NCBI GenBank assembly: GCA_002269645.1
Contig: NIVC01000023.1
Location: 558,001-622,000, forward strand
Direction: 5' to 3'
Length of the DNA stretch: 64,000 bases
Source of the DNA: Macrostomum lignano
Taxonomy: Eukaryota
Positions 5,511 to 63,480 of this stretch are shown here, piece after piece. Numbering within the stretch: the first letter of the stretch is position 1; every line of letters starts with the position of its first letter. Below the pieces are notes generated by a model. The model was not told the DNA's origin. It did not search any database and worked only from the letters and a program-made list of their open reading frames with translations. The position numbers and the translations under genes are program-made.

Positions 5511-5787
<277 letters not shown>

Positions 5788-6294
5788 CTACCCCACCCCA
5801 TCGGAATGCAAATCACATTAATTAGACCCTCTGGAGAATAAGGCACCGCCGCGGGGGTGGACGACGCAGAGATTGCGGAGGCTGCAGGGAGGGTGGGGCT
5901 TCGCGATGAAGAATGGGTGAGAAGAAGGGGATAGATAGGTACAGAACTCGCTGATTTAATGAGTCTGAGCTCCCCTTGCTTAGCCCGTGACAAGCTGCGA
6001 AAATAGAGCTGACGGGTGCTAATAGAATCAGCGAAAACTTCGCAAACGGGTTTGCACAGTTTTTTTTTGGGAGCGAGCGCTGCCTGATTGTCTTCCGCCC
6101 AGCGCGCGCCTCGTATAGCATGCACTTTTACTGGACTTTGTGCTGCAGTTTTCTCGTTAGTTCCCTGCATTTGACTAATCGAATTTCGGTGTAGCCAACA
6201 ATGCTTCTACGCCTTTGAAAACAAGTGCAAAGAGTAAAATGTTCGATTTTTAGTGAACACCGGGTCGGTTGGTTATTCTCTTTACAGCTGTAGC

Positions 6295-11385: not shown

Positions 11386-18043
<6,658 letters not shown>

Positions 18044-18979
18044 TAGCAAGTTGGCGTTAAACTACTAAAAACTAAACAAACCAAATCTAGTAAAAACACA
18101 AGCTGTTTTGCTTATTCGTGATTATTTAACGAGCTACACAATATGAAACTGCCAAAGACATTTATCTTTAACATTACTGTCCTTTGTTGCGATCTGTTAT
18201 AACAACTAACAATATAATGATGTAGCTGTATGTATTCGTGTTATTGTATCAATGTATCAATGATAACTTTTTGCTTTATAGATGTTTTGTCTTGCTGTGT
18301 GATCCGACTAAAAGTATTAGAATACTCATTTTACTTAAAAACTTAATATGTTTTCACTGAAAAAAACACATTTTCAACTTCGCATTGAACTAACCAAATT
18401 TGACCTCTGAGAGAGAAATTAATTTGATAATTTTATGTTGGTCTTTTATTTTTGATAAGAAGAAATCATCTTTATGCTTACATCTCGTTTTTATGAAGTA
18501 TTTAATATTCTGTAGAATAGTCTGCGTAGATCGAACATCGAATGCCGTTTTTGCTTTCTAATGGTTAGCTATTAAAAATATAATTAATCAAATCTGACAA
18601 TAAAACGATACTCATTATACACTCGTAGCTACAGGTTACGAAGATGCGACAAGAAAGCAATATGTTTATTTGATTCTTTCTTCCCTCGGTAAATAGATAC
18701 TTTGTCATTTATAAGTACATGTAACTTAAAACTTTCAATATCTACCTTAATTCCTACATTTTTATAGCCCTAATTTGTAAATCATATAGACATTTTTCGC
18801 ACGTGTTCAGCGTAGTTGAATTTCCGACAAAAAAATTATCGCTGAAAAAAAGGCATATTTTGTCTTTTAGAGGGGCGAAAAAGACTAATCTTATTTAAAT
18901 TGTAGTAATATTATTTATATTTCACAGTTTAATGCAATATTAAACCAGTCATACTCATAAAAAAACAGATACAACTTGG

Positions 18980-19728
18980 TATAGCATTTTGCAGCCCATT
19001 TGGGCTTACGCGCATTTAATTTAATCCAAGATACGTTTGCCAATGTAACAGAGCTTTTGTCTATGGTAGCAAGGCTGGCGCAGCGGCATTTAATTTGGTC
19101 GAACAAGCATCCATTTGGTCCAAACACTCGTGAGCCATTGGACAAACTCTTGCCTTCTCTCAACCGTCTGCAGGTTGTTGCGCACCGCTGGAATGTCAGC
19201 GTCTCTACCAACAATTTTCAGTTGCTTTTCCAGAGCTCTGCTGATAGTCGAAATCTGATAACCAACTGGAGCTGTTCCCTCAACTTCTGCTGCACTTCGG
19301 CAACGTCAACAAAGGGTTCGTCTCCACTGCATCGAGTAGCAGTTGGACCTGAGGCTCTCGAGCAACTTTCCTTGGCGATTGCCACCCTTTCGCAGGCAAT
19401 CTCTGCCGGCAGAGTTTCAAGGCGCTGCTGGATGCTGTAAACCACCTTTCTTTTACATTCAGCAACCTTGCAATGTCCTTTGGGTGTTCACCTCCGTCGA
19501 GTGCTTCGATCACAAGCCAATGACATTCGTTCAACAGCCTAGCATATGGTCCACAATTCTGGGATTGAGCTGCAAATGAACTAAATGGACCAAATTGATG
19601 CTTGTTGGACCAAATTAAATGCCGCTGTGCCAGCCTTGCTACCATAGACAAAAGCTCCATTACTTTGACAAACGTATCTTGGATTAAATTAAATGCGCGT
19701 AAGCCCAAATGGGCTGCAAAATGCTATA
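18980..19728 (-). mobile_element. Non-autonomous Tc1/IS630-type DNA transposon (long TIRs, decayed transposase N-terminal HTH inside)
   Basis: ~170-bp TIRs beginning TAGCATTTTGCAGCCC. Internal frameshifted peptides IEALDGGEHPKDIARLLNV, LLDAVETNP and STISRALEKQL..RNNLQTVERRQEFVQW resemble the Tc1-like DNA-binding region. Confidence 0.75.
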
Positions 19729-19733
19729 CTATA

Positions 19734-20162
19734 TATACCTTTTTGCAATCAATTTCGTCGTTTTTGCGTTCAATTTCGGCGCGAGCGCTAGTGTGCAGTC
19801 CAAACAACAGAGCCATAGACACTGGGCAACTTTTGCGTTCAAATTCGGCCTTTTTGCGTCCTATTTCGGCAGCGCAATCACATGGGCCGCACTGTGGGCA
19901 CAGTTCGAATGTTTTTGCCATAGACACTTTCTCACTCGATCGCATTCAGTGAGGGTGGGACGAAAAATTTGTCTCCTAAAGCAGGCCTATAGTCGTCTCC
20001 GCAAGTATGTTTGATGCCGTAAGCTGCCGAAACAGGACGCAAAAAGGCCGAATTTGAACGCAAAAGTTGCCCAGTGTCTATGGCTCAGTTGTTTAGACTG
20101 CACACTAGCGCTCGCGCCGAAATTGAACGCAAAAACGACGAAATTGATTGAAAAAAGGTATA
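19734..20162. mobile_element. MITE with ~140-bp inverted arms and TA-flanked ends
   Basis: TATACCTTTTTTGCAATCAATTTCGTCG.. is mirrored by ..CGACGAAATTGATTGAAAAAAGGTATA. Confidence 0.75.
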
Positions 20163-20275
20163 TTTTAGGGGTACGACAATATGCCCCGAGAAAACAAAAA
20201 TCAGTCCCCAAAAAAAATTCGTCATTGGACTGCAATTTCGCGTGTTAGACCCTTTCTTTTAGTGGATGTGAATTT

Positions 20276-26895: not shown

Positions 26896-27757
26896 TAGCT
26901 TTTTGCAGCCCTTTTGGGCTTACACGCATTGAATTTTATCCAAAACCGTGGATGAAGGAATAGGAAGGAATCTATTCCGTCATCCATGTCCAAAACACGG
27001 TTGCCAAATGGAGCTTTTGTCTATGGTAGCAAGGCTGGCACTGTGGAATTTAATTTGGTCCAACAAGCACCAATTTGGTCCAAACGCTCGTGAGCCATTC
27101 GGCAAACTCTTGCCTTCTCGCAACCGTCTGTGGTTGTTTTGAGTGCCGCTGGAAGTTCAGCGTCTCTACCAACAATTTCCAGTTGCTTCTCCAGAGCTCT
27201 GCTGACAGTCGAAAGCTGGAACTGTTTCTTTAACTTCTACTGCATTTTCTGCAACGTCAACAAAAGGTTCGTCTTAACTCCGTCGAGTAGCAGTTACACC
27301 TGCATGAGGCTCCAGCAACTTGCCTTGGCGATTGCTACCCTTTCGCAGGCGATCTCTGCTTGCAGTGGTTTCAACGCACTGATGGATGCTGTAAACTACC
27401 TTTTCTTTTACATTCAGCAGCCTTGCAATGTCATTTGGGTGTTCAAAGGTAAACTACCTTTTCTTTTACATTCAGCAGCCTTGCAATGTCATTTGGGTGT
27501 TCATCTCTGCCGAGAGCTTCGATCACATTCGTTCGACTGCTCAGCATACTCGTATGGTCCACAATTGTGGGGCAGATGTTGCTCCTCCGCAGCCATTGCA
27601 AATGAAGCTATGGACCAAATTGATGCTTGTTGGACCAAATTAAATGCTGCTATGCCAGCCTTGCTACCATAGAAAAAGCTCCGCCACATTGGCAAACGTA
27701 TCTTGGATTAAATTCAATGCGCGTAGGCCCAAATGGCAAATGAGCTGCAAAAAGGTA
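26896..27757 (-). mobile_element. Second, more diverged copy of the Tc1/IS630-derived element at 18980-19728
   Basis: Same TIR sequence (TAGCTTTTTGCAGCCC..GCTGCAAAAAGGTA) and colinear internal sequence with small duplications. Confidence 0.75.
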
Positions 27758-43084: not shown

Positions 43085-44115
43085 CAATGCCAACAAAAGT
43101 TCTGAGCGTTTTTATACTCAAACTTTGAATTCATTTTTCCAGTCCCAAAACAGTTTCTATTCCAGGATATGATCACCATCCTGATCAATGACCTGTTACC
43201 ATCTGGCGATGAGATCGTGGATGCCATTCTTAAACAACTCAGGCGGCAGCGGCTTGAAGTATTGCTCGAGCCAAGCTGTCACCTCCTCCTCGTCTTTTAA
43301 CATCACGCCATTTATGTGGTTCTGCATAGAGCGGAACAGGTGGTAGTCGATGGCGCAAGATCAGGCGAGTATGGAGGGTGGGGCATGACTTCCCAGCCCA
43401 GCTCGAGCAGCTTCTGCAGTGTCTTCTTCGCCACGTGAGGTCGAGCGTTGTCGTGAAGAAATCGAATTTTCGCGCGAGCGCCCTGCTGCTTGACAATCGC
43501 CTGGTGCAGTCTGTCCAGCTGCTCGCAGTAGTAGACTCGGCGGTGATGCTGGTGTTACGAGGCAGGAGCTCCCATTGGACGATTCCACTGGAATTCCACC
43601 AGACGCACAGCATGACCTTCTTTTGGTGTGGATCAGGTTTGGGCGTTGGCTGTAGCTGATCCCCCACGCCAAGCCACTGGCGCAATTGCGTGTCATGTTG
43701 AAATAGGCCACCCACTTCTCATCGCCAGTCACCAGGGTATCGAGCCATCCTGGGTTGCGACGATAGGACAGGAGTTGGGTGCATGTGATGATGCGCTGAT
43801 CCTTGTTCTCACGTGAAAGTTCTAGCACGGCAGCGTTGCTCGCTCAGACAGTCCTCGCCATACGCCTGACATAACTTGCGATGCGCGTCAGCTGCTGAGT
43901 CGCCCAGCTTGAAGCAGAAAAGTAACGATGCTCGAATGTGGTAACGTTGGTTGTGTTGTAGCGTAGCCATTGTAGTTACAGGTTGAGCTTATCCATATGG
44001 ATACGGTAGTGCACACTGGTCACTCTTATATGCCCCCATAGAACATTCCAGAAATCTCTCTGGAAAAAAATCTAGAAGTTTAAAAAAAACTCTCGAAACT
44101 TTTGTTACAACCCAA
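43085..44115 (-). mobile_element. Second mariner (D,D34D-type), internally deleted and frameshifted
   Basis: Motifs VTGDEKW, KKVMLCVWWNSSGI, FLHDNARPH and HPPYSPDL. TIR (TA)TTGGGTTGTAACAAAAG at 44115, with a degenerate partner AACAAAAGTTCTGAGCGTTTTT near 43092. Confidence 0.88.
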
Positions 44116-44269: not shown

Positions 44270-46215
44270 ATTAGTTGCGCCTATGCACACAGGCCACTGG
44301 AGAGACCATCGAGTCCTGGTACGCCAGACTGCACACTGCGGCAGAGTCGTGCGACTTTGAGCAGCTGAAGGACTCACTCATCAAAGACCAGCTCGTGGCA
44401 ACCTGCAGCTCTGACAAGCTATGCAGGCGGCTGCTTCAGGGGGCGAACATCAGCCTGGTGGAGGCCTTGCGGAAGGTGAGGGCATTCGAGGCTGCTGAGG
44501 AACAGGCCACCGAGATGGAGAAGGCAGACTCGCACGTGGCCAGCGTTGCGGCATCATGAGCTCCGCACCTTCAGAGCACTCAGCCTGCCAAGCCCACGCC
44601 CAACAAGAGCCGAAGTTCGCGCCTACGGGATACTGACACCTCTCAAGATTGTGGGTACTGCCGACCTTGACACCAAGTGAGAGCTGCCAGAACAACAGCG
44701 ACCTTCCACATCATGGACGGCGACGGGCTGACGATATTGGGGCGCCAGCCCGCATTCAAGCTAGGAGTGCTGAAGATCCAGCGACCTGAAGCTACCAAGC
44801 CGCAAAACAACAATGCCATTGCCGACACCATACCCTTCGAGCAGTATAGTGACCCGCAGCTCAAGGCCATTTTGCAGAGGCACAAAAAATGTTTTCAAAG
44901 AGGCCATAGTGGAGGAGCTCAAGGCTTTGGAGGACTAGGGCATCATCGAGGCAGTCAAAAGTCCTAGCGCCTGGGTGTCACGCATGGTGGTGGTGCCCAA
45001 GGGCGACGGTGGCGTCAGAATCTATCCTAGGACCTCCGCGATCTCAACACTGTCATCATCCCAGAGAAGAAGCAAATCCCCACGCTGGATGAAATCACCG
45101 AGAAAATGGCCGACGCCAGGCTGTCCAGCAAACTCGATATCCGGAAGGCCTTTTATAAGATCCCAGTCCACGAGAGCAGCCGTCAGCTCTTCACCTTCAG
45201 CATGCCCCTCGGACTAATGCGGCTCAAGAGGCTTAGTATAGGGTTCACAAATGCCTCGAAAATACTTCAACGAGTCACGCTTGGCATCTTCAGCGGCATT
45301 GACGGCGCCCGGTGGGCGCACGATGACGGGATGGGTTACGCCTCCGACATGAAGCAGCACCATGAGAGGCTGGACGCCTGCCTTCAGCGCCTCCGAGAGG
45401 TCGGCATCACCCTCAATCAGGACAAGTGCAGGTTCGCCCCGCCTACTGTCGAGTTTCTCGGAATGCGCCTGACCGTCCGGGTCATGCAGCCGGCCGCCGA
45501 GAAAATTGACGCCATGCAGAACTTCCGACAGCCCACCAACGTGGCCAACGTCCGCTCTTTCCTGGGAACCGTGAACTTCCTGGCAAAGTTCATCCCGAGC
45601 TTTGCTGACCTCGTCGCCCCACTCCGGCAGCTGACGAAGAAGGGCCAGGCCTGGGAGTGGACGGAAAAACACACTGCGGCGCTTGACGGCATCAAGAAGG
45701 CGATCTCAGACGCGGACACGCTGGCCTTTTTCGACCGCAGGCAGCACATGGAGGCTCCTGGTGGACGCATCTCCGATCGGCCTCGGCGCTATCCTCTCAC
45801 AGCGACAGCCGAACGGTAGCTGCCGACCTTTCGCCTCCGCCAGCAGAGCCCTCTCGCCGGTGGGGCAGCGGTACGCGCAGATCGAGCGGGAGGCTCTCGC
45901 CATCAAATTTGGGTGTCTCAAGTTTGAGCACTATCTGGCTGGCGACCCAGACTTCACCGTGGTGACGGACCACCGACAGCTCGTGCCGCTTTTCAAGCCT
46001 GGCTCCCATCCGCCACCGTGGATCGAGCGAATGGCGCTGCGCATTCAGCATCTCCGCTTCAACCTGCTCTACCGGCCAAACTGGACCAACCCGGCTGACC
46101 TGCTGAGTCGGCATCCACTGCGAGAACAGCGTCCAGAATGTCGGTGAAGAGCTTGACGCCGCCTTCGCCAACGCCGTGTCGACCGGGGCCGTGCCGAAGG
46201 GCTTCAGTCTCGACC
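44270..46215 (+). mobile_element. Ty3/Gypsy LTR-retrotransposon gag-pol remnant (no LTRs identified)
   Basis: gag-like GETIESWYARLHTAAESCDF..LIKDQLV; RT SKLDIRKAFYKIP..(AH)DD..GITLNQDKC; RNase H LLVDASPIGLGAILSQ..YAQIEREALAI..TDHRQL..NPADLLSR. Multiple frameshifts. Confidence 0.9.
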
Positions 46216-50282: not shown

Positions 50283-51541
50283 TCTCTTAAAATCTTAAAA
50301 CTAGCTTCATAGATAGTGTAGGCAATTTTAATTTCCTTTCACTTTTGTTTGTAGGCAATCAAATTGCTATATAGGCGCCAGAATTACTTCGTGTAACTCA
50401 AATACACATAAGTCCTGTAATTGTAAATTCACGCACTTTTTTATGAACACAAACGAGAGGGTTTTGCTATAGCTTAATTGTACGGGCTAACAGCATCAAG
50501 GATTCTTTAATTAAAAAAAAGATTGATTCTCAAATTACAGTTTTCATAGCATTGCAGTCATAAGCTAGTTGATTTTCATTTTGTCTACTAAACACGAAAT
50601 ACCGCATTGTTAATGTATGCCAGCAGCGTATTACGCTCTTATAGTAGCTAAATAATTCAAATGTAGACTAACTTCACTGCGGTTAGTACGCCAGCTGAGC
50701 GCACCCATGCAAGGAGGTAAGGCGCTGTATCGTACATAGCTAATCGAGTTTTGACCATGCATGTGTAGATAGGCTCAGGCCCTCTGCAGATGATTAAAAT
50801 TTAAATTTTATCTGTCTTCATCCATATCTATAGGTTCTTATAATAGTAGCATATAGTTTGCAAATATCAGGTTTTACAAAAAAAGACTCCAGATGAATTA
50901 TAAATTTTGCTTCTTAATTGATGCTTCTATATAGTGCGTTGCATCACGGATATTCTCTTCCATTGGTAACTGGTACGATCCAGGAACGGCTGTAAGCAGT
51001 AAAATAGTCCTATTTTAGACTCCGTGTGTCAATAAATATGTAAACTGCCATCGTAAAATATCGATTTCTATGCAAATCTGTCGTGATAATTGGGGTTTTT
51101 TATGCGACTGTTCAAAAGCGACGCGAGAAGTTAATTGCCATTCAGCGATATGGAATTCATCAAATTCCATCGCATCATGCTCGATTGTTATGCAGTGTTT
51201 TTGTGACGAAATATGACAGTGTATGGCATTCAATGGATAGATAGCTAATTTACTGTGTACTCGTTTCTAATTCCTTCCTCGAAATCACTTGTATAGCTTA
51301 TACTGAACTACATGCAAACATATTTTGAAGATACTCCCTAAAGACTCGATTTACACGGCCATCTGATTAAAGTAGCATCCTTTTAGGCGTGAAATGAAAA
51401 TGTGAAACGTCATAGGCTTACATTTTTTGCGCGATATTTACTCTCATCTTGATCAATCCTGCATGGGAGCTTTTTCTTTTTTAGATTTACTCGATAGTTC
51501 GTTAGAATTTATTTGCCAAAATATTAACCTGGAGTTATGAT

Positions 51542-52498
51542 TTAAATAGATCCTCGCTTGCCCCATCTGAACACGTTCTTGTTGTTGGTCCGGTCTGATC
51601 GCTTGCCCCATCTGAACACGTTCTTGTTGTTGGTCCGGTCTGATCGCTTGCCCCATCTGAACACGTTCTTGTTGTTGGTCCGGTCTGATCGCTTGCCCCA
51701 TCTGAACACGTTCTTGTTGTTGGTCCGGTCTGATCGCTTGCCCCATCTGAACACGTTCTTGTTGTTGGTCCGGTCTGATCGCTTGCCCCATCTGAACACG
51801 TTCTTGTTGTTGGTCCGGCCTCTCTTGCCCCATCTGAACACGTTCTTGTTGTTGGTCCGACCTCTCTTGCCCCATCTGAACACGTTCTTGTTGTTGTTTC
51901 GGCCTCTCTTGCCCCATCTGAACACGTTCTTGTTGTTGGTCCGGCTTCTCTTGCCCCATCTGAACACGTTCTTGTTGTTGGTCCGGCCTCTCTTGCCCCA
52001 TCTGAACACGTTCTTGTTGTTGGTCCGGCCTCTCTTGCCCCATCTGAACACGTTCTTGTTGTTGGTCCGGTCTCTCTTGCCCCATCTGAACACGTTCTTG
52101 TTGTTGGTCCGGCCTCTCTTGCCCCATCTGAACACGTTCTTGTTGTTGGTCCGGCCTCTCTTGCCCCATCTGAACACGTTCTTGTTGTTGGTCCGGCCTC
52201 TCTTGCTGTCACTGGCCCACTGAAGAGAAGACATCTCGTCTGGATCAAACAGCTTTTCGCTTTTAGGAATCTTCACTTGGTTTAATGGGAGTCCATCCAA
52301 GCTTTGAATGGTCTCATTCGGTTCCGTATCTGAAAGTTTGGATCATTATGCTCATGCTTCTGAAATTCTACCGAAAGAAATATTAACGCAGCTATTACAC
52401 AGCGTACCTTCGAGAGCATCGACTGCGGCAGGATTGAACGAAGCAATTCCGAGACAAGCCAACGCCAGAATAAGGCCGCCTGCACGTCTGATTGACAT
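51542..52498 (-). CDS. Neuropeptide precursor, 292 aa, 2 exons (52498-52408, 52329-51542), encoding 15 x-NNKNVFRW-amide peptides
   Basis: Signal peptide MSIRRAGGLILALACLGIASFNPAAVDA. A 78-nt phase-1 intron (G|GTACGC..TTTCAG) joins it in frame to an acidic spacer. Then 15 repeats each end in GKR (amidation Gly + dibasic site): 7x GRTNNKNVFRW, 1x DRT-, 1x SRT-, 1x GRNNNKNVFRW, 5x SDRTNNKNVFRW. Confidence 0.93.
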
Positions 52499-53199
52499 CT
52501 GAAACCTGTTTGTTAATCTCATTAACGGTATAGTGTTTCCGACAGCTAAAATTCTGCAGCTGAGCATTTCTGTAATTGATCAGTCCCTAGCTACATTTTG
52601 AGTATAGGATCTCACAGTCTAAGCACGAAATTTGACCATGCGGCACCTATCATTGGCCACGGGATGTAGAAGCAGCCTCGCCGTGTCTGGATGACGAATC
52701 ATAATTCGTTTTATTTGCTGCAGTGAATTCGTAACGTGGTCATGCTGTCACGCAACTACATGTAACGTTATACAGATATAGCCATAATTGCAATTGATTT
52801 AGAATGTAGAGCTTTCTTTGTCTGATTCCGATCGGAAAAACTAATTCTGAAAGGCTGGTGGGTATAGTCAATTAAAAATTGGTCATCAGATCTTCTAATA
52901 AGTAATTGGGGTGATCATACTGCGGCAGCTTTCATATATGTACGTGCTCAACCGATTCAACCTACAGGCCACACGGAGGCTAGCCAGCACATTGCGCCCT
53001 GAAGCTGGTCGCCTCATACAATTCTATCAATGAACTGGTAGACCAGCTGTTGCTACATGGCCATATACCATGTACATGCATGGTGCATGGTAGTAGATAG
53101 GTGCGTTTATTGGTGCACTTCTCCTACTCCTTAGCGCTACCCACACAGCCTCCTCGCTAGCCAGTGTTCTCACATCATCTTGCGCACTGATTCGCTTGC

Positions 53200-61939: not shown

Positions 61940-63480
61940 ACTTCCATCTTCTTTTCTGTTTCCTATCTTCTCTCTCGTCTCTTCTCTCTCTCCCCTCTTA
62001 TCTCTTCTTTCTTCTCTCCTCTCTCGTCTCCTCTCTCGTCTCTTCCTTCTCCCCTCTATTCTTTTCTCTCTTTTCTCCTCTCTTCGCTCTGGTCTCTGGT
62101 CTCTCATATCTCCTTTCCCCTGTTTTATCTTTTCTCATTTCTCTCTGCTCTCTACTCTCTCTTCCCTCTCCTCTCTGCTCTCTACTCTCTCTTCCCTCAC
62201 CTCTCTTCTCACTCCTTACTCTACCCTCTCTCAACACTTTCCTTATCTCTACTCTCTCCTTTTTCCTCTCTTCTCTCAACTCTTTCCTTTCCTCTGTCCA
62301 CTCTCTCCTCTCATCTCTCTGCTATCTCCTGTCCTATCTCTCTTCTCTCTAACCTCTCCCTTTTTTCCTCTCCTCTCTCGTCCTTTTCACCAATTTCCCC
62401 TGTCCTCTCGATTCTCTCCCTGCCCCTCCTCTCTCCTCACTCACTTCTCATCTCTCCCTTGTCTGCACCTCTCATCTCTTATTTCTTATCTCTCCTCTTT
62501 TCTCTCTACTCTCCCATCTCTCGTCTGTTCTGATCTCTCATCTCCCCTCTCTGTTCTGTCATCTTTACTCTCATATGTTCTCTCACCTCTCTCCACTTGT
62601 ACTCCTCTCTTTCCCATTTTTTGACTCAGGAGGACTCGATCCTTTCAATTCTTTCTTCTTGTCTCTTTACTTCTCTCTTCTATACTCTCTCCCTCTCCCT
62701 TGTCTTCTCTCTTCTTTCTCACTCTCCTCTCTCCTTTTTTATATCGTCTGTTCACTCTCATCTTCGCTCTCTCATTCCCCTCTCTCTTCTGTCATCTCTA
62801 CTCTCCTCTCTACTGTGTACTCTTCTCTTTCCCCTCTTCTGACACCCCTCTTTCCTTACTCCTCTCTTCTCTTCCTTCTTCTATACTCTCTCCCCTCTAT
62901 TCTCTTCTCTCGTCTCTCTGCACTCTGCTCTCTCTTCCTTCATCTCTCATCTCTACTCTCACGATCATCTTTTTTCATCTCTCTCATCTCCACGATCTCA
63001 TCTCTTTCCTCTCTCCTCTTCCCTTTACTCTATCATCTCTCCTTTCTCCTCTCTTCTTTCTCAACTCTCTCTCTCTTATCTCTTACATCTTATATCTTAT
63101 CTCATCTTCTCACTCTTCCCTCTCTCATCTCTTATCTCCTCTTCTAACTCCTCTCTCTCCCCTCTATCCCCCTCTTATCTCCTCTCTTCTCTATCCTTTC
63201 TAATCTCTCCTCTCAATCCTCTCTCATCTGCCTCTCTGTTCTCTCATCTCTCATCTCTTCTCACTCTTCTCTATTCTCCTCTCTCATTGATCCTCTGTCT
63301 CATCTCTCCCCTCTTCTCTCCATCTTCTCACCTCTACTATTTCTTCTCCCTTCTCTCTCCCCTCCTCTCGCTTCTTCGTCCCATATTCTCTGCTCTCTCC
63401 TCAACCTCCTCGTACGTCTTTCCTGATATCTTCTATCTATTCTCTTATCCCCTCTTGCCCCTCCTCCCTTTCTAATAGTC
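61940..63480. repeat. ~1.5-kb degenerate CT-rich polypyrimidine low-complexity tract
   Basis: Plus strand is almost entirely C/T with scattered A; the L/S/F/P-rich ORFs there are compositional. Confidence 0.93.

Follow-up and report, generated by a model that had tools for sequence, protein, structure and literature searches.

Annelid FRWamide, sNPF-Type and Luqin-Type Precursors

Two families of annelid precursors and the luqin family provide the framework in which an array of FRWamide peptides can be placed. In the FRWamide family, represented by the Urechis unicinctus FRWamide precursor (P0004, GenBank MT162138) and Capitella teleta CAPTEDRAFT_185359 (P0017), all peptide copies have the form x[V/I/L/M]FRW-GKR and the signal peptide is followed by a cysteine motif, C-x3-C-x6-9-C-x-C. 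This motif is carried by P0001, P0003, P0004, P0009, P0016, P0017, P0018 and P0024 among the proteins considered here. In situ hybridisation in the Urechis study placed FRWamide mRNA in the apical-organ region of the larva, close to the nerve rings of the prototroch and telotroch, and above the abdominal chaetae. The paper that named FRWamide termed it unique to Urechis; the presence of xFRW-GKR precursors in Capitella and in several further assemblies indicates that the family is wider than this genus.

The second annelid family consists of the 'RYa'-type precursors (Platynereis P0019 = F8UKT9), in which RYamide, RFamide and LFRWamide copies occur together and which have a PHVPFRFG end. The Platynereis RYa peptides are now taken as annelid sNPF, and the LFRFamides of molluscs activate an sNPF-type receptor. 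Luqin precursors, as described in the literature, contain one or two peptide copies beside the signal peptide, and their C-terminal part has two cysteines with a spacing of about 10 residues. In spiralians, flatworms included, luqins end in RFamide and have their own precursors.

In the free-living flatworm Macrostomum lignano, the peptide GRTNNKNVFRWa has been listed as a transcriptome-derived product of the propeptide Mlig032062.g1 (Dandamudi et al., J Biol Chem 2022, PMC9234716). In that study, three M. lignano DEG/ENaC channels, alone or combined, gave no response to the synthetic peptide, and another peptide, AYGSMPWa, was assigned to the same propeptide (PMC9234716). A full-text literature search gave no mention of Mlig032062, AYGSMPW or TNNKNVFRW in any paper besides that of Dandamudi et al.

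Gene Structure and Splicing

The window, that is, the whole 64-kb stretch of DNA that was analysed, contains on its minus strand a gene that begins with an ATG at 52498 and ends with a TAA stop codon at 51542-51544. In the list of open reading frames the gene appears in two pieces, a repeat ORF of 252 codons (51542-52300, minus strand) and a separate short ORF that starts at ATG 52498 and whose product resembles a signal peptide. Joining the two exons in a spliced gene model gives a single reading frame for a prepropeptide of 292 aa. Exon 1 (52408..52498, minus strand, 91 nt) encodes MSIRRAGGLILALACLGIASFNPAAVDALE and ends one base into the following codon. The phase 1 intron (52330..52407, minus strand, 78 nt) has the boundaries GTACGC...TTTCAG and thus follows the GT..AG rule, and exon 2 (51542..52329, minus strand) encodes an acidic spacer, 15 peptide units and a short tail, GSI, before the TAA codon. 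Two further AG acceptors lie within the intron and were considered as alternatives by direct reading of the sequence; both are ruled out by stop codons downstream, so that only the 52408/52329 splice carries the reading frame of the signal-peptide exon into the repeats. A polyadenylation signal, AATAAA (51508..51513, minus strand), is located 28 nt past the stop codon.

The 5' end of the transcript leaves room for more than one arrangement. A TTTCAG hexamer lies directly 5' of the ATG (52499..52504, minus strand) and is a candidate 3' splice site or spliced-leader trans-splice acceptor; it could be the acceptor for a spliced leader or mark the end of an intron in the 5'-UTR. According to the published description of the genome, trans-splicing affects 38.8% of M. 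lignano genes. An upstream in-frame ATG (52565..52567, minus strand; ORF 52352..52567) would add 23 residues (MLSCRILAVGNTIPLMRLTNRFQ) before the signal peptide. Translation would start at ATG 52567 only if the mRNA begins further upstream and is not trans-spliced, and the canonical signal peptide argues for ATG 52498 as the start.

The signal peptide was judged by the charge of its n-region, its Kyte-Doolittle hydropathy and the small residues near the cleavage site. It occupies approximately residues 1-21 (52436-52498) and has the n-region MSIRR, a hydrophobic core of 13 residues (approximately residues 6-18, Kyte-Doolittle 2.2-2.9) and the small residues G-I-A ahead of the probable cleavage site. 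The only cysteine of the whole precursor, residue 15, lies within this segment. The signal peptide is followed by the acidic pro-region DTEPNETIQSLDGLPLNQVKIPKSEKLFDPDEMSSLQWASDS (52199..52329, minus strand), which closes with the first KR cleavage site; the spacer comprises 51 aa and contains 11 D/E residues against 3 K/R.

Organization of the Repeat Array

The remainder of exon 2 is almost entirely composed of the repeats. Tandem Repeats Finder reports an array at 51552-52206 with a period of 42, 15.2 copies, 97% matches, no indels and a score of 1063. When the array is dissected unit by unit, it resolves into 15 contiguous units, ten of 42 nt and five of 45 nt, each of which ends in W-G-K-R. 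The longer units are collected at one end. Sub-array A (51779..52198, minus strand) consists of the ten 42-nt units, x-R-[T/N]-NNKNVFRW-GKR, in which x is G in eight units, D in one and S in one. Sub-array B (51554..51778, minus strand) consists of the five 45-nt units, SDRTNNKNVFRW-GKR, which are all identical at the DNA level (5/5, 100%) and in which every Arg of a KR site is encoded by CGA.

A core of 30 nt, AACAACAAGAACGTGTTCAGATGGGGCAAG, which codes for NNKNVFRWGK, is invariant in 15/15 units. The differences between units at the DNA level are confined to the first two to three codons and to the Arg codon of the KR site (AGA vs CGA), and all variation in the peptides is N-terminal to an internal Arg, with the exception of one Thr-to-Asn change. 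The CGA codon is already present in unit 10, indicating that the 45-nt repeat and the peptide unit are out of register with each other. Each sub-block is internally homogeneous, and the two can be told apart by the length of their units and by the Arg codon used in the KR site. This pattern points to growth of the array by recent tandem duplication and homogenisation, or by unequal exchange, acting separately on the two sub-blocks in a minisatellite-prone genome. It is plausible that copy number varies between lines and between duplicated copies of the chromosome.

Processing and Predicted Peptides

Every copy in the array is followed by Gly and a dibasic site, and the precursor starts with a signal peptide, as is expected of an amidated multi-copy prohormone. 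The signal peptide would be removed in the ER, a PC1/PC2-type convertase would cleave behind each Lys-Arg, and a carboxypeptidase E-type enzyme would take off the basic residues. Peptidylglycine alpha-amidating monooxygenase would then convert the exposed Gly to give a C-terminal Trp-amide, and each precursor molecule would yield 15 peptides. The predicted products of dibasic cleavage are GRTNNKNVFRWa (seven copies), SDRTNNKNVFRWa (five copies) and single copies of variants that begin with DRT-, SRT- and GRNNN-. Predicted monoisotopic masses are 1389.738 Da for GRTNNKNVFRWa and 1534.775 Da for SDRTNNKNVFRWa.

The internal Arg, to which the first-pass annotation had drawn attention, may allow a second cut. 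As a point beyond that annotation, in every unit the P4 position of this Arg is occupied by a basic residue, either K (in KRGR, KRDR and KRSR) or R (in RSDR). A basic residue at P4 is the usual setting for monobasic cleavage, which makes such a cut plausible in all units. It would reduce the five variants to TNNKNVFRWamide (14/15; predicted monoisotopic mass 1176.615 Da) and NNNKNVFRWamide (1/15). The mature peptide would most likely serve as a neuronal or neurosecretory signal acting on a rhodopsin-type GPCR. On the basis of the motif, candidate receptors would belong to the RFamide/RYamide group (sNPF-like) or to the expansion of RFamide/Wamide receptors in protostomes that Thiel et al. describe. 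The three DEG/ENaC channels to which the synthetic peptide was applied are excluded as targets.

The most abundant of the predicted dibasic products, the 11-residue GRTNNKNVFRW, is identical to the peptide published from Mlig032062.g1, and from this exact match it follows that a transcript exists. The match also marks M. lignano or a very close relative as the source of the window, with the protein databases giving no match to the species itself or to a near relative. The correspondence between the published gene model and the locus is only partial, as they share GRTNNKNVFRWa and AYGSMPWa is not encoded in the window: neither AYGSMPW, nor MPWG, nor any further W-G-K-R array was found in the six frames of the 64-kb window. 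The published model and the locus may therefore differ. The published model may be a paralogue or an allele of the gene described here, or the attribution of AYGSMPWa may conflate two genes.

These results largely bear out the first-pass annotation of this DNA. The extent that it had given for the feature, 51542-52498, agrees exactly with the gene model and the ORF list. The signal peptide and acidic spacer that it had noted are both evident in the precursor, and the 15 GKR-terminated repeats, nearly identical at the DNA level, are recovered by the unit count and the invariant core. The five different peptides that it had predicted, 11-12 aa long, emerge again from the dissection of the units, with GKR behind each of them. 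Its reading of the locus as a neuropeptide precursor is supported by the gene structure, by the multi-copy xFRW-GKR relatives and by the published transcript-derived peptide. What does not stand is the novelty that it implied, given that GRTNNKNVFRWa had already been predicted, synthesised and tested (PMC9234716). Its suggestion that the array may encode an uncharacterised ligand holds with regard to receptor and function; with regard to sequence it does not, the peptide having been published. Since the peptide is already in the literature, novelty is low and its status is that of an orphan ligand: GRTNNKNVFRWa is an orphan ligand and not a new discovery.

Sequence Relatives

A word-indexed search of 5.8 billion proteins returned 26 matches with E-values from 3e-15 to 7e-3. 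The best of these are multi-copy xFRW-GKR precursors, among them Urechis FRWamide, the Capitella protein and Platynereis 'RYa', with E-values of 3e-15 to 5e-6 that are inflated by the repeats and reflect a similarity of 4-6 motif residues plus GKR only. With E-values inflated in this way and similarity confined to the motif, common descent is not established. HMMER, run exhaustively over 1.84 billion representatives, returned 264 matches. The top HMMER matches, long repeat proteins of low identity, were judged compositional artefacts and set aside; the lower ranks contain the same genuine matches together with other multi-copy precursors of RFamide type. Nothing closely like NNKNVFRW was found among the 1.84 billion representatives, and a scan of the JGI metagenomes gave 15 pattern matches, none of which was confirmed. 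Residues 1-74 of the precursor gave nothing below E = 5 in a BLASTP comparison with all 162 fetched proteins. No FRW-G precursor occurs among the planarian and schistosome prohormones in the supplement of Collins et al., where the only match is an unrelated internal FRWS in Sma-npp-27.

The genuine matches split into two families, the Cys-motif FRWamide precursors and the 'RYa'/sNPF-type precursors. As far as can be judged from sequence, the M. lignano peptides resemble the former more closely than the latter.

Evaluation of Alternative Interpretations

The first matter to weigh is whether the array is a gene for signalling peptides at all. The window contains 80 tandem-repeat calls, whose intervals sum to about 32% of the sequence, and the array itself can be read as repeat ORFs in several frames. 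A minisatellite without function, open in one frame by accident, would fit such surroundings. The window also contains fragments of LTR-type reverse transcriptase/RNase H and of a mariner-type transposase, and no match to Rfam was found in it. The published description of the M. lignano genome gives 15% for tandem or simple repeats and 21% for LTR elements, along with much duplicated sequence; the repeat and transposon content of the window agrees with that description. Against an accidental open frame, the periods of the array, 42 and 45 nt, are both divisible by three, whereas the periods of many other arrays in the window are not. Splicing joins the array in frame to a signal peptide, its GKR sites are perfect and a polyadenylation signal follows, and a peptide derived from a transcript has already been published. 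No other ORF in the window contains 15 G[KR][KR] sites. The periods, the in-frame spliced signal peptide, the perfect processing sites and the transcriptome-derived peptide together amount to more than chance, and the minisatellite explanation is hardly credible. Somewhat less remote, though still very improbable, is a secreted array of non-neuronal peptides, for instance cationic, Trp-containing, amidated host-defence or gland peptides. The predicted peptides do have a net charge of +3 to +4 and an RW-amide end, and multi-copy precursors of amidated antimicrobial peptides exist in other animals. The peptide, however, is very hydrophilic (TNNKN) and has only three hydrophobic residues, its motif matches that of annelid peptides whose mRNA is found in the larval apical-organ region, and the architecture of the precursor is that of a textbook neuropeptide. 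The locus is therefore best read as a genuine two-exon prepro-neuropeptide gene, corresponding to the Mlig032062.g1 transcript or to its paralogue or allele, with a probability of about 0.85.

The place of this neuropeptide gene among known families is less certain, and descent from the annelid FRWamide precursors, descent from the lophotrochozoan sNPF-type system and an independent origin are each no better than tentative proposals. In the annelid FRWamide precursors, as in the M. lignano precursor, a series of x[V/I/L]FRW-GKR copies comes after the signal peptide, and every copy is an N-terminally extended W-amide. The top-ranked genuine matches (P0001, P0003, P0004, P0009 and P0017) belong to this family, the hexamers KNVFRW (in P0003) and NKVFRW (in P0001) are common to both, and the V at position -4 of all M. 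lignano peptides is the commonest residue at that position in the family (20/41 peptides). The gene could thus be an orthologue of the Urechis and Capitella precursors that has lost the N-terminal cysteines, a possibility that we consider doubtful. The defining C-x3-C-x6-9-C-x-C motif is missing, as there is no cysteine past the signal peptide, and the 15 nearly identical NVFRW-GKR copies abut each other, whereas the annelid precursors have 5-7 diverse copies with acidic spacers between them. The coding sequences of P0001 and P0003 are single uninterrupted ORFs, in contrast to the M. lignano gene with its one intron after the signal peptide, and no similarity extends beyond the motif.

A flatworm orthologue of the lophotrochozoan sNPF-type system, with an sNPF/PrRP-type receptor and a role in feeding or energy balance, may also be proposed with caution. 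The VFRW-G end fits the C-terminal theme [L/V/I]FR[F/Y/W]amide and the multi-copy GKR architecture is common to both, while P0005-P0015, P0019 and P0020 are significant matches that themselves contain LFRW-GKR and VFRY-GKR copies; in the literature, RYa and LFRFamide peptides are equated with sNPF. However, the conserved C-terminal PH[V/T]PFRFG peptide of 13 annelid-type matches is replaced in M. lignano by the tail GSI and a stop codon, and only W-amides are encoded instead of a mixture of RY, RF and RW copies. The W-amides of the sNPF-type family are bare tetrapeptides (KR-LFRW-GKR in 21/22), in contrast to M. lignano peptides of 9-12 residues with V at -4, and here also the likeness ends at the motif. 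The likeness to LFRF/LFRY/LFRWamide (sNPF-type) peptides that the first-pass annotation had pointed out is borne out by the search matches for the C-terminal motif, and fails for the tail, the mixture of copies and the rest of the precursor. Its other suggestion, a luqin or RWamide type, finds no support. Some echinoderm and hemichordate luqins (e.g., ...KFMRWamide) do share the RW-amide C-terminus, but the M. lignano precursor carries 15 copies after a spacer of 51 aa instead of one or two next to the signal peptide and lacks the C-terminal cysteine pair, and in flatworms the luqins are RFamides with precursors of their own; membership of the luqin family was rejected on these grounds. The remaining proposal, a lineage-specific peptide family that reached its FRWamide end by convergence and has no orthology to annelid or mollusc precursors, is also only a tentative one. 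It is in keeping with the lack of a flatworm or other close relative among the representatives and the JGI metagenomes and of an FRW-G precursor in the Collins et al. supplement, and the 4-6 residues in common could easily have converged. On the other hand, M. lignano itself appears to be missing from the protein databases and the sampling of flatworms is thin, so that the absence of relatives is weak evidence.

Without the annelid Cys motif, the PHVPFRFG tail or the luqin Cys pair, the M. lignano precursor can be assigned to a family at the level of the motif only. On sequence grounds it would stand closest to annelid FRWamide, within the sNPF-like theme of [L/V/I]FR[F/Y/W]amide, in the sense of 'works like' and not of 'member of'.

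Significance

The genomic model of this orphan flatworm neuropeptide is exact with regard to exons, intron, copy number and sub-arrays, and it includes a likely trimmed product; the published record of the peptide so far is that of a synthetic test compound only. It indicates that a flatworm has a motif-level counterpart of the xFRW-GKR precursors and that the five apparent variants may reduce to one mature peptide. This is of use for deorphanising the GPCRs of M. lignano and does not represent a new kind of system. So far as we are aware, flatworms have no described sNPF-type ligand. It is a speculative suggestion, which at present we would hold to be rather unlikely, that the FRWamide array supplies the ligand still missing in platyhelminths for an sNPF/PrRP-type or annelid FRWamide system. 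If it is true, flatworm peptidergic signalling would be tied to a bilaterian family, and one dominant peptide, TNNKNVFRWamide, with 14-15 copies per precursor, would be available in a model flatworm that is transgenic and tractable by RNAi.

Repeats, mobile elements and a mucin-like gene candidate

Tandem-repeat calls cover ~32% of the 64-kb window (sum of called intervals), far more than the published genome-wide figure of 15% for M. lignano. The minisatellites of the window include long arrays with 23-, 29-, 31- and 32-nt periods, and pure tetranucleotide tracts are found at 2416-2749 ((TTAG)83), 5511-5790 ((CTAT)70), 15146-15532 ((ATCT)97) and 15802-16207 ((ACTG)100). One 3.2-kb minisatellite looks coding (periods 42/45/63 nt) and forms a 1138-codon ORF (11478-14894, + strand) of Ser/Thr/Pro-rich ADSTPM/ADSTAAP repeats with a Cys-rich EGF-like stretch at its end. 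A second ORF not far away (16383-16787, + strand) matches EGF weakly and contains a segment that resembles a transmembrane helix. Jointly, these two ORFs look like a gene for a mucin-like membrane glycoprotein. A set of long Ser/Leu-rich ORFs on the + strand is spurious, arising from a degenerate, low-complexity CT-rich tract of 1.4 kb (61950-63402).

Two inverted-repeat pairs lie next to each other, one at 18979-19729 (144-nt arms, 95% complementarity) and the other at 19733-20163 (141-nt arms, 97% complementarity). The former gives rise to mirror ORFs, both of which start with MGLRAFNLIQDTF. Related sequence is found again near 27130-27672, and together these copies probably represent a foldback or MITE-like repeat family. 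Transposable-element remnants lie ~5-8 kb away from the FRWamide precursor gene. One is a frameshifted fragment of a mariner-type transposase (43239-43828, - strand; Transposase_1, E = 1e-16); the other, of LTR type, comprises reverse transcriptase and RNase H (45106-46147, + strand; RVT_1, E = 1e-16; RT_RNaseH, E = 2e-24).

The precursor locus and the extent of the FRWamide family

A second peptide, AYGSMPWa, has been assigned to Mlig032062.g1, the M. lignano propeptide listed as the source of GRTNNKNVFRWa (J Biol Chem 2022, PMC9234716). Neither AYGSMPW nor any MPW-G motif is present in any frame of the 64-kb window. The mismatch reflects either a paralogous or allelic locus unlike that of the window or an attribution that fuses two genes.

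FRWamide precursors with the Cys motif (C-x3-C-x6-9-C-x-C) were described as unique to Urechis in the U. unicinctus study that named the family. Such precursors are present in Capitella teleta as well, and in several ENA and Logan assemblies (database relatives P0001, P0003, P0009, P0016, P0017, P0018 and P0024; loci L001 and L002). The FRWamide family is therefore wider than the naming paper says.
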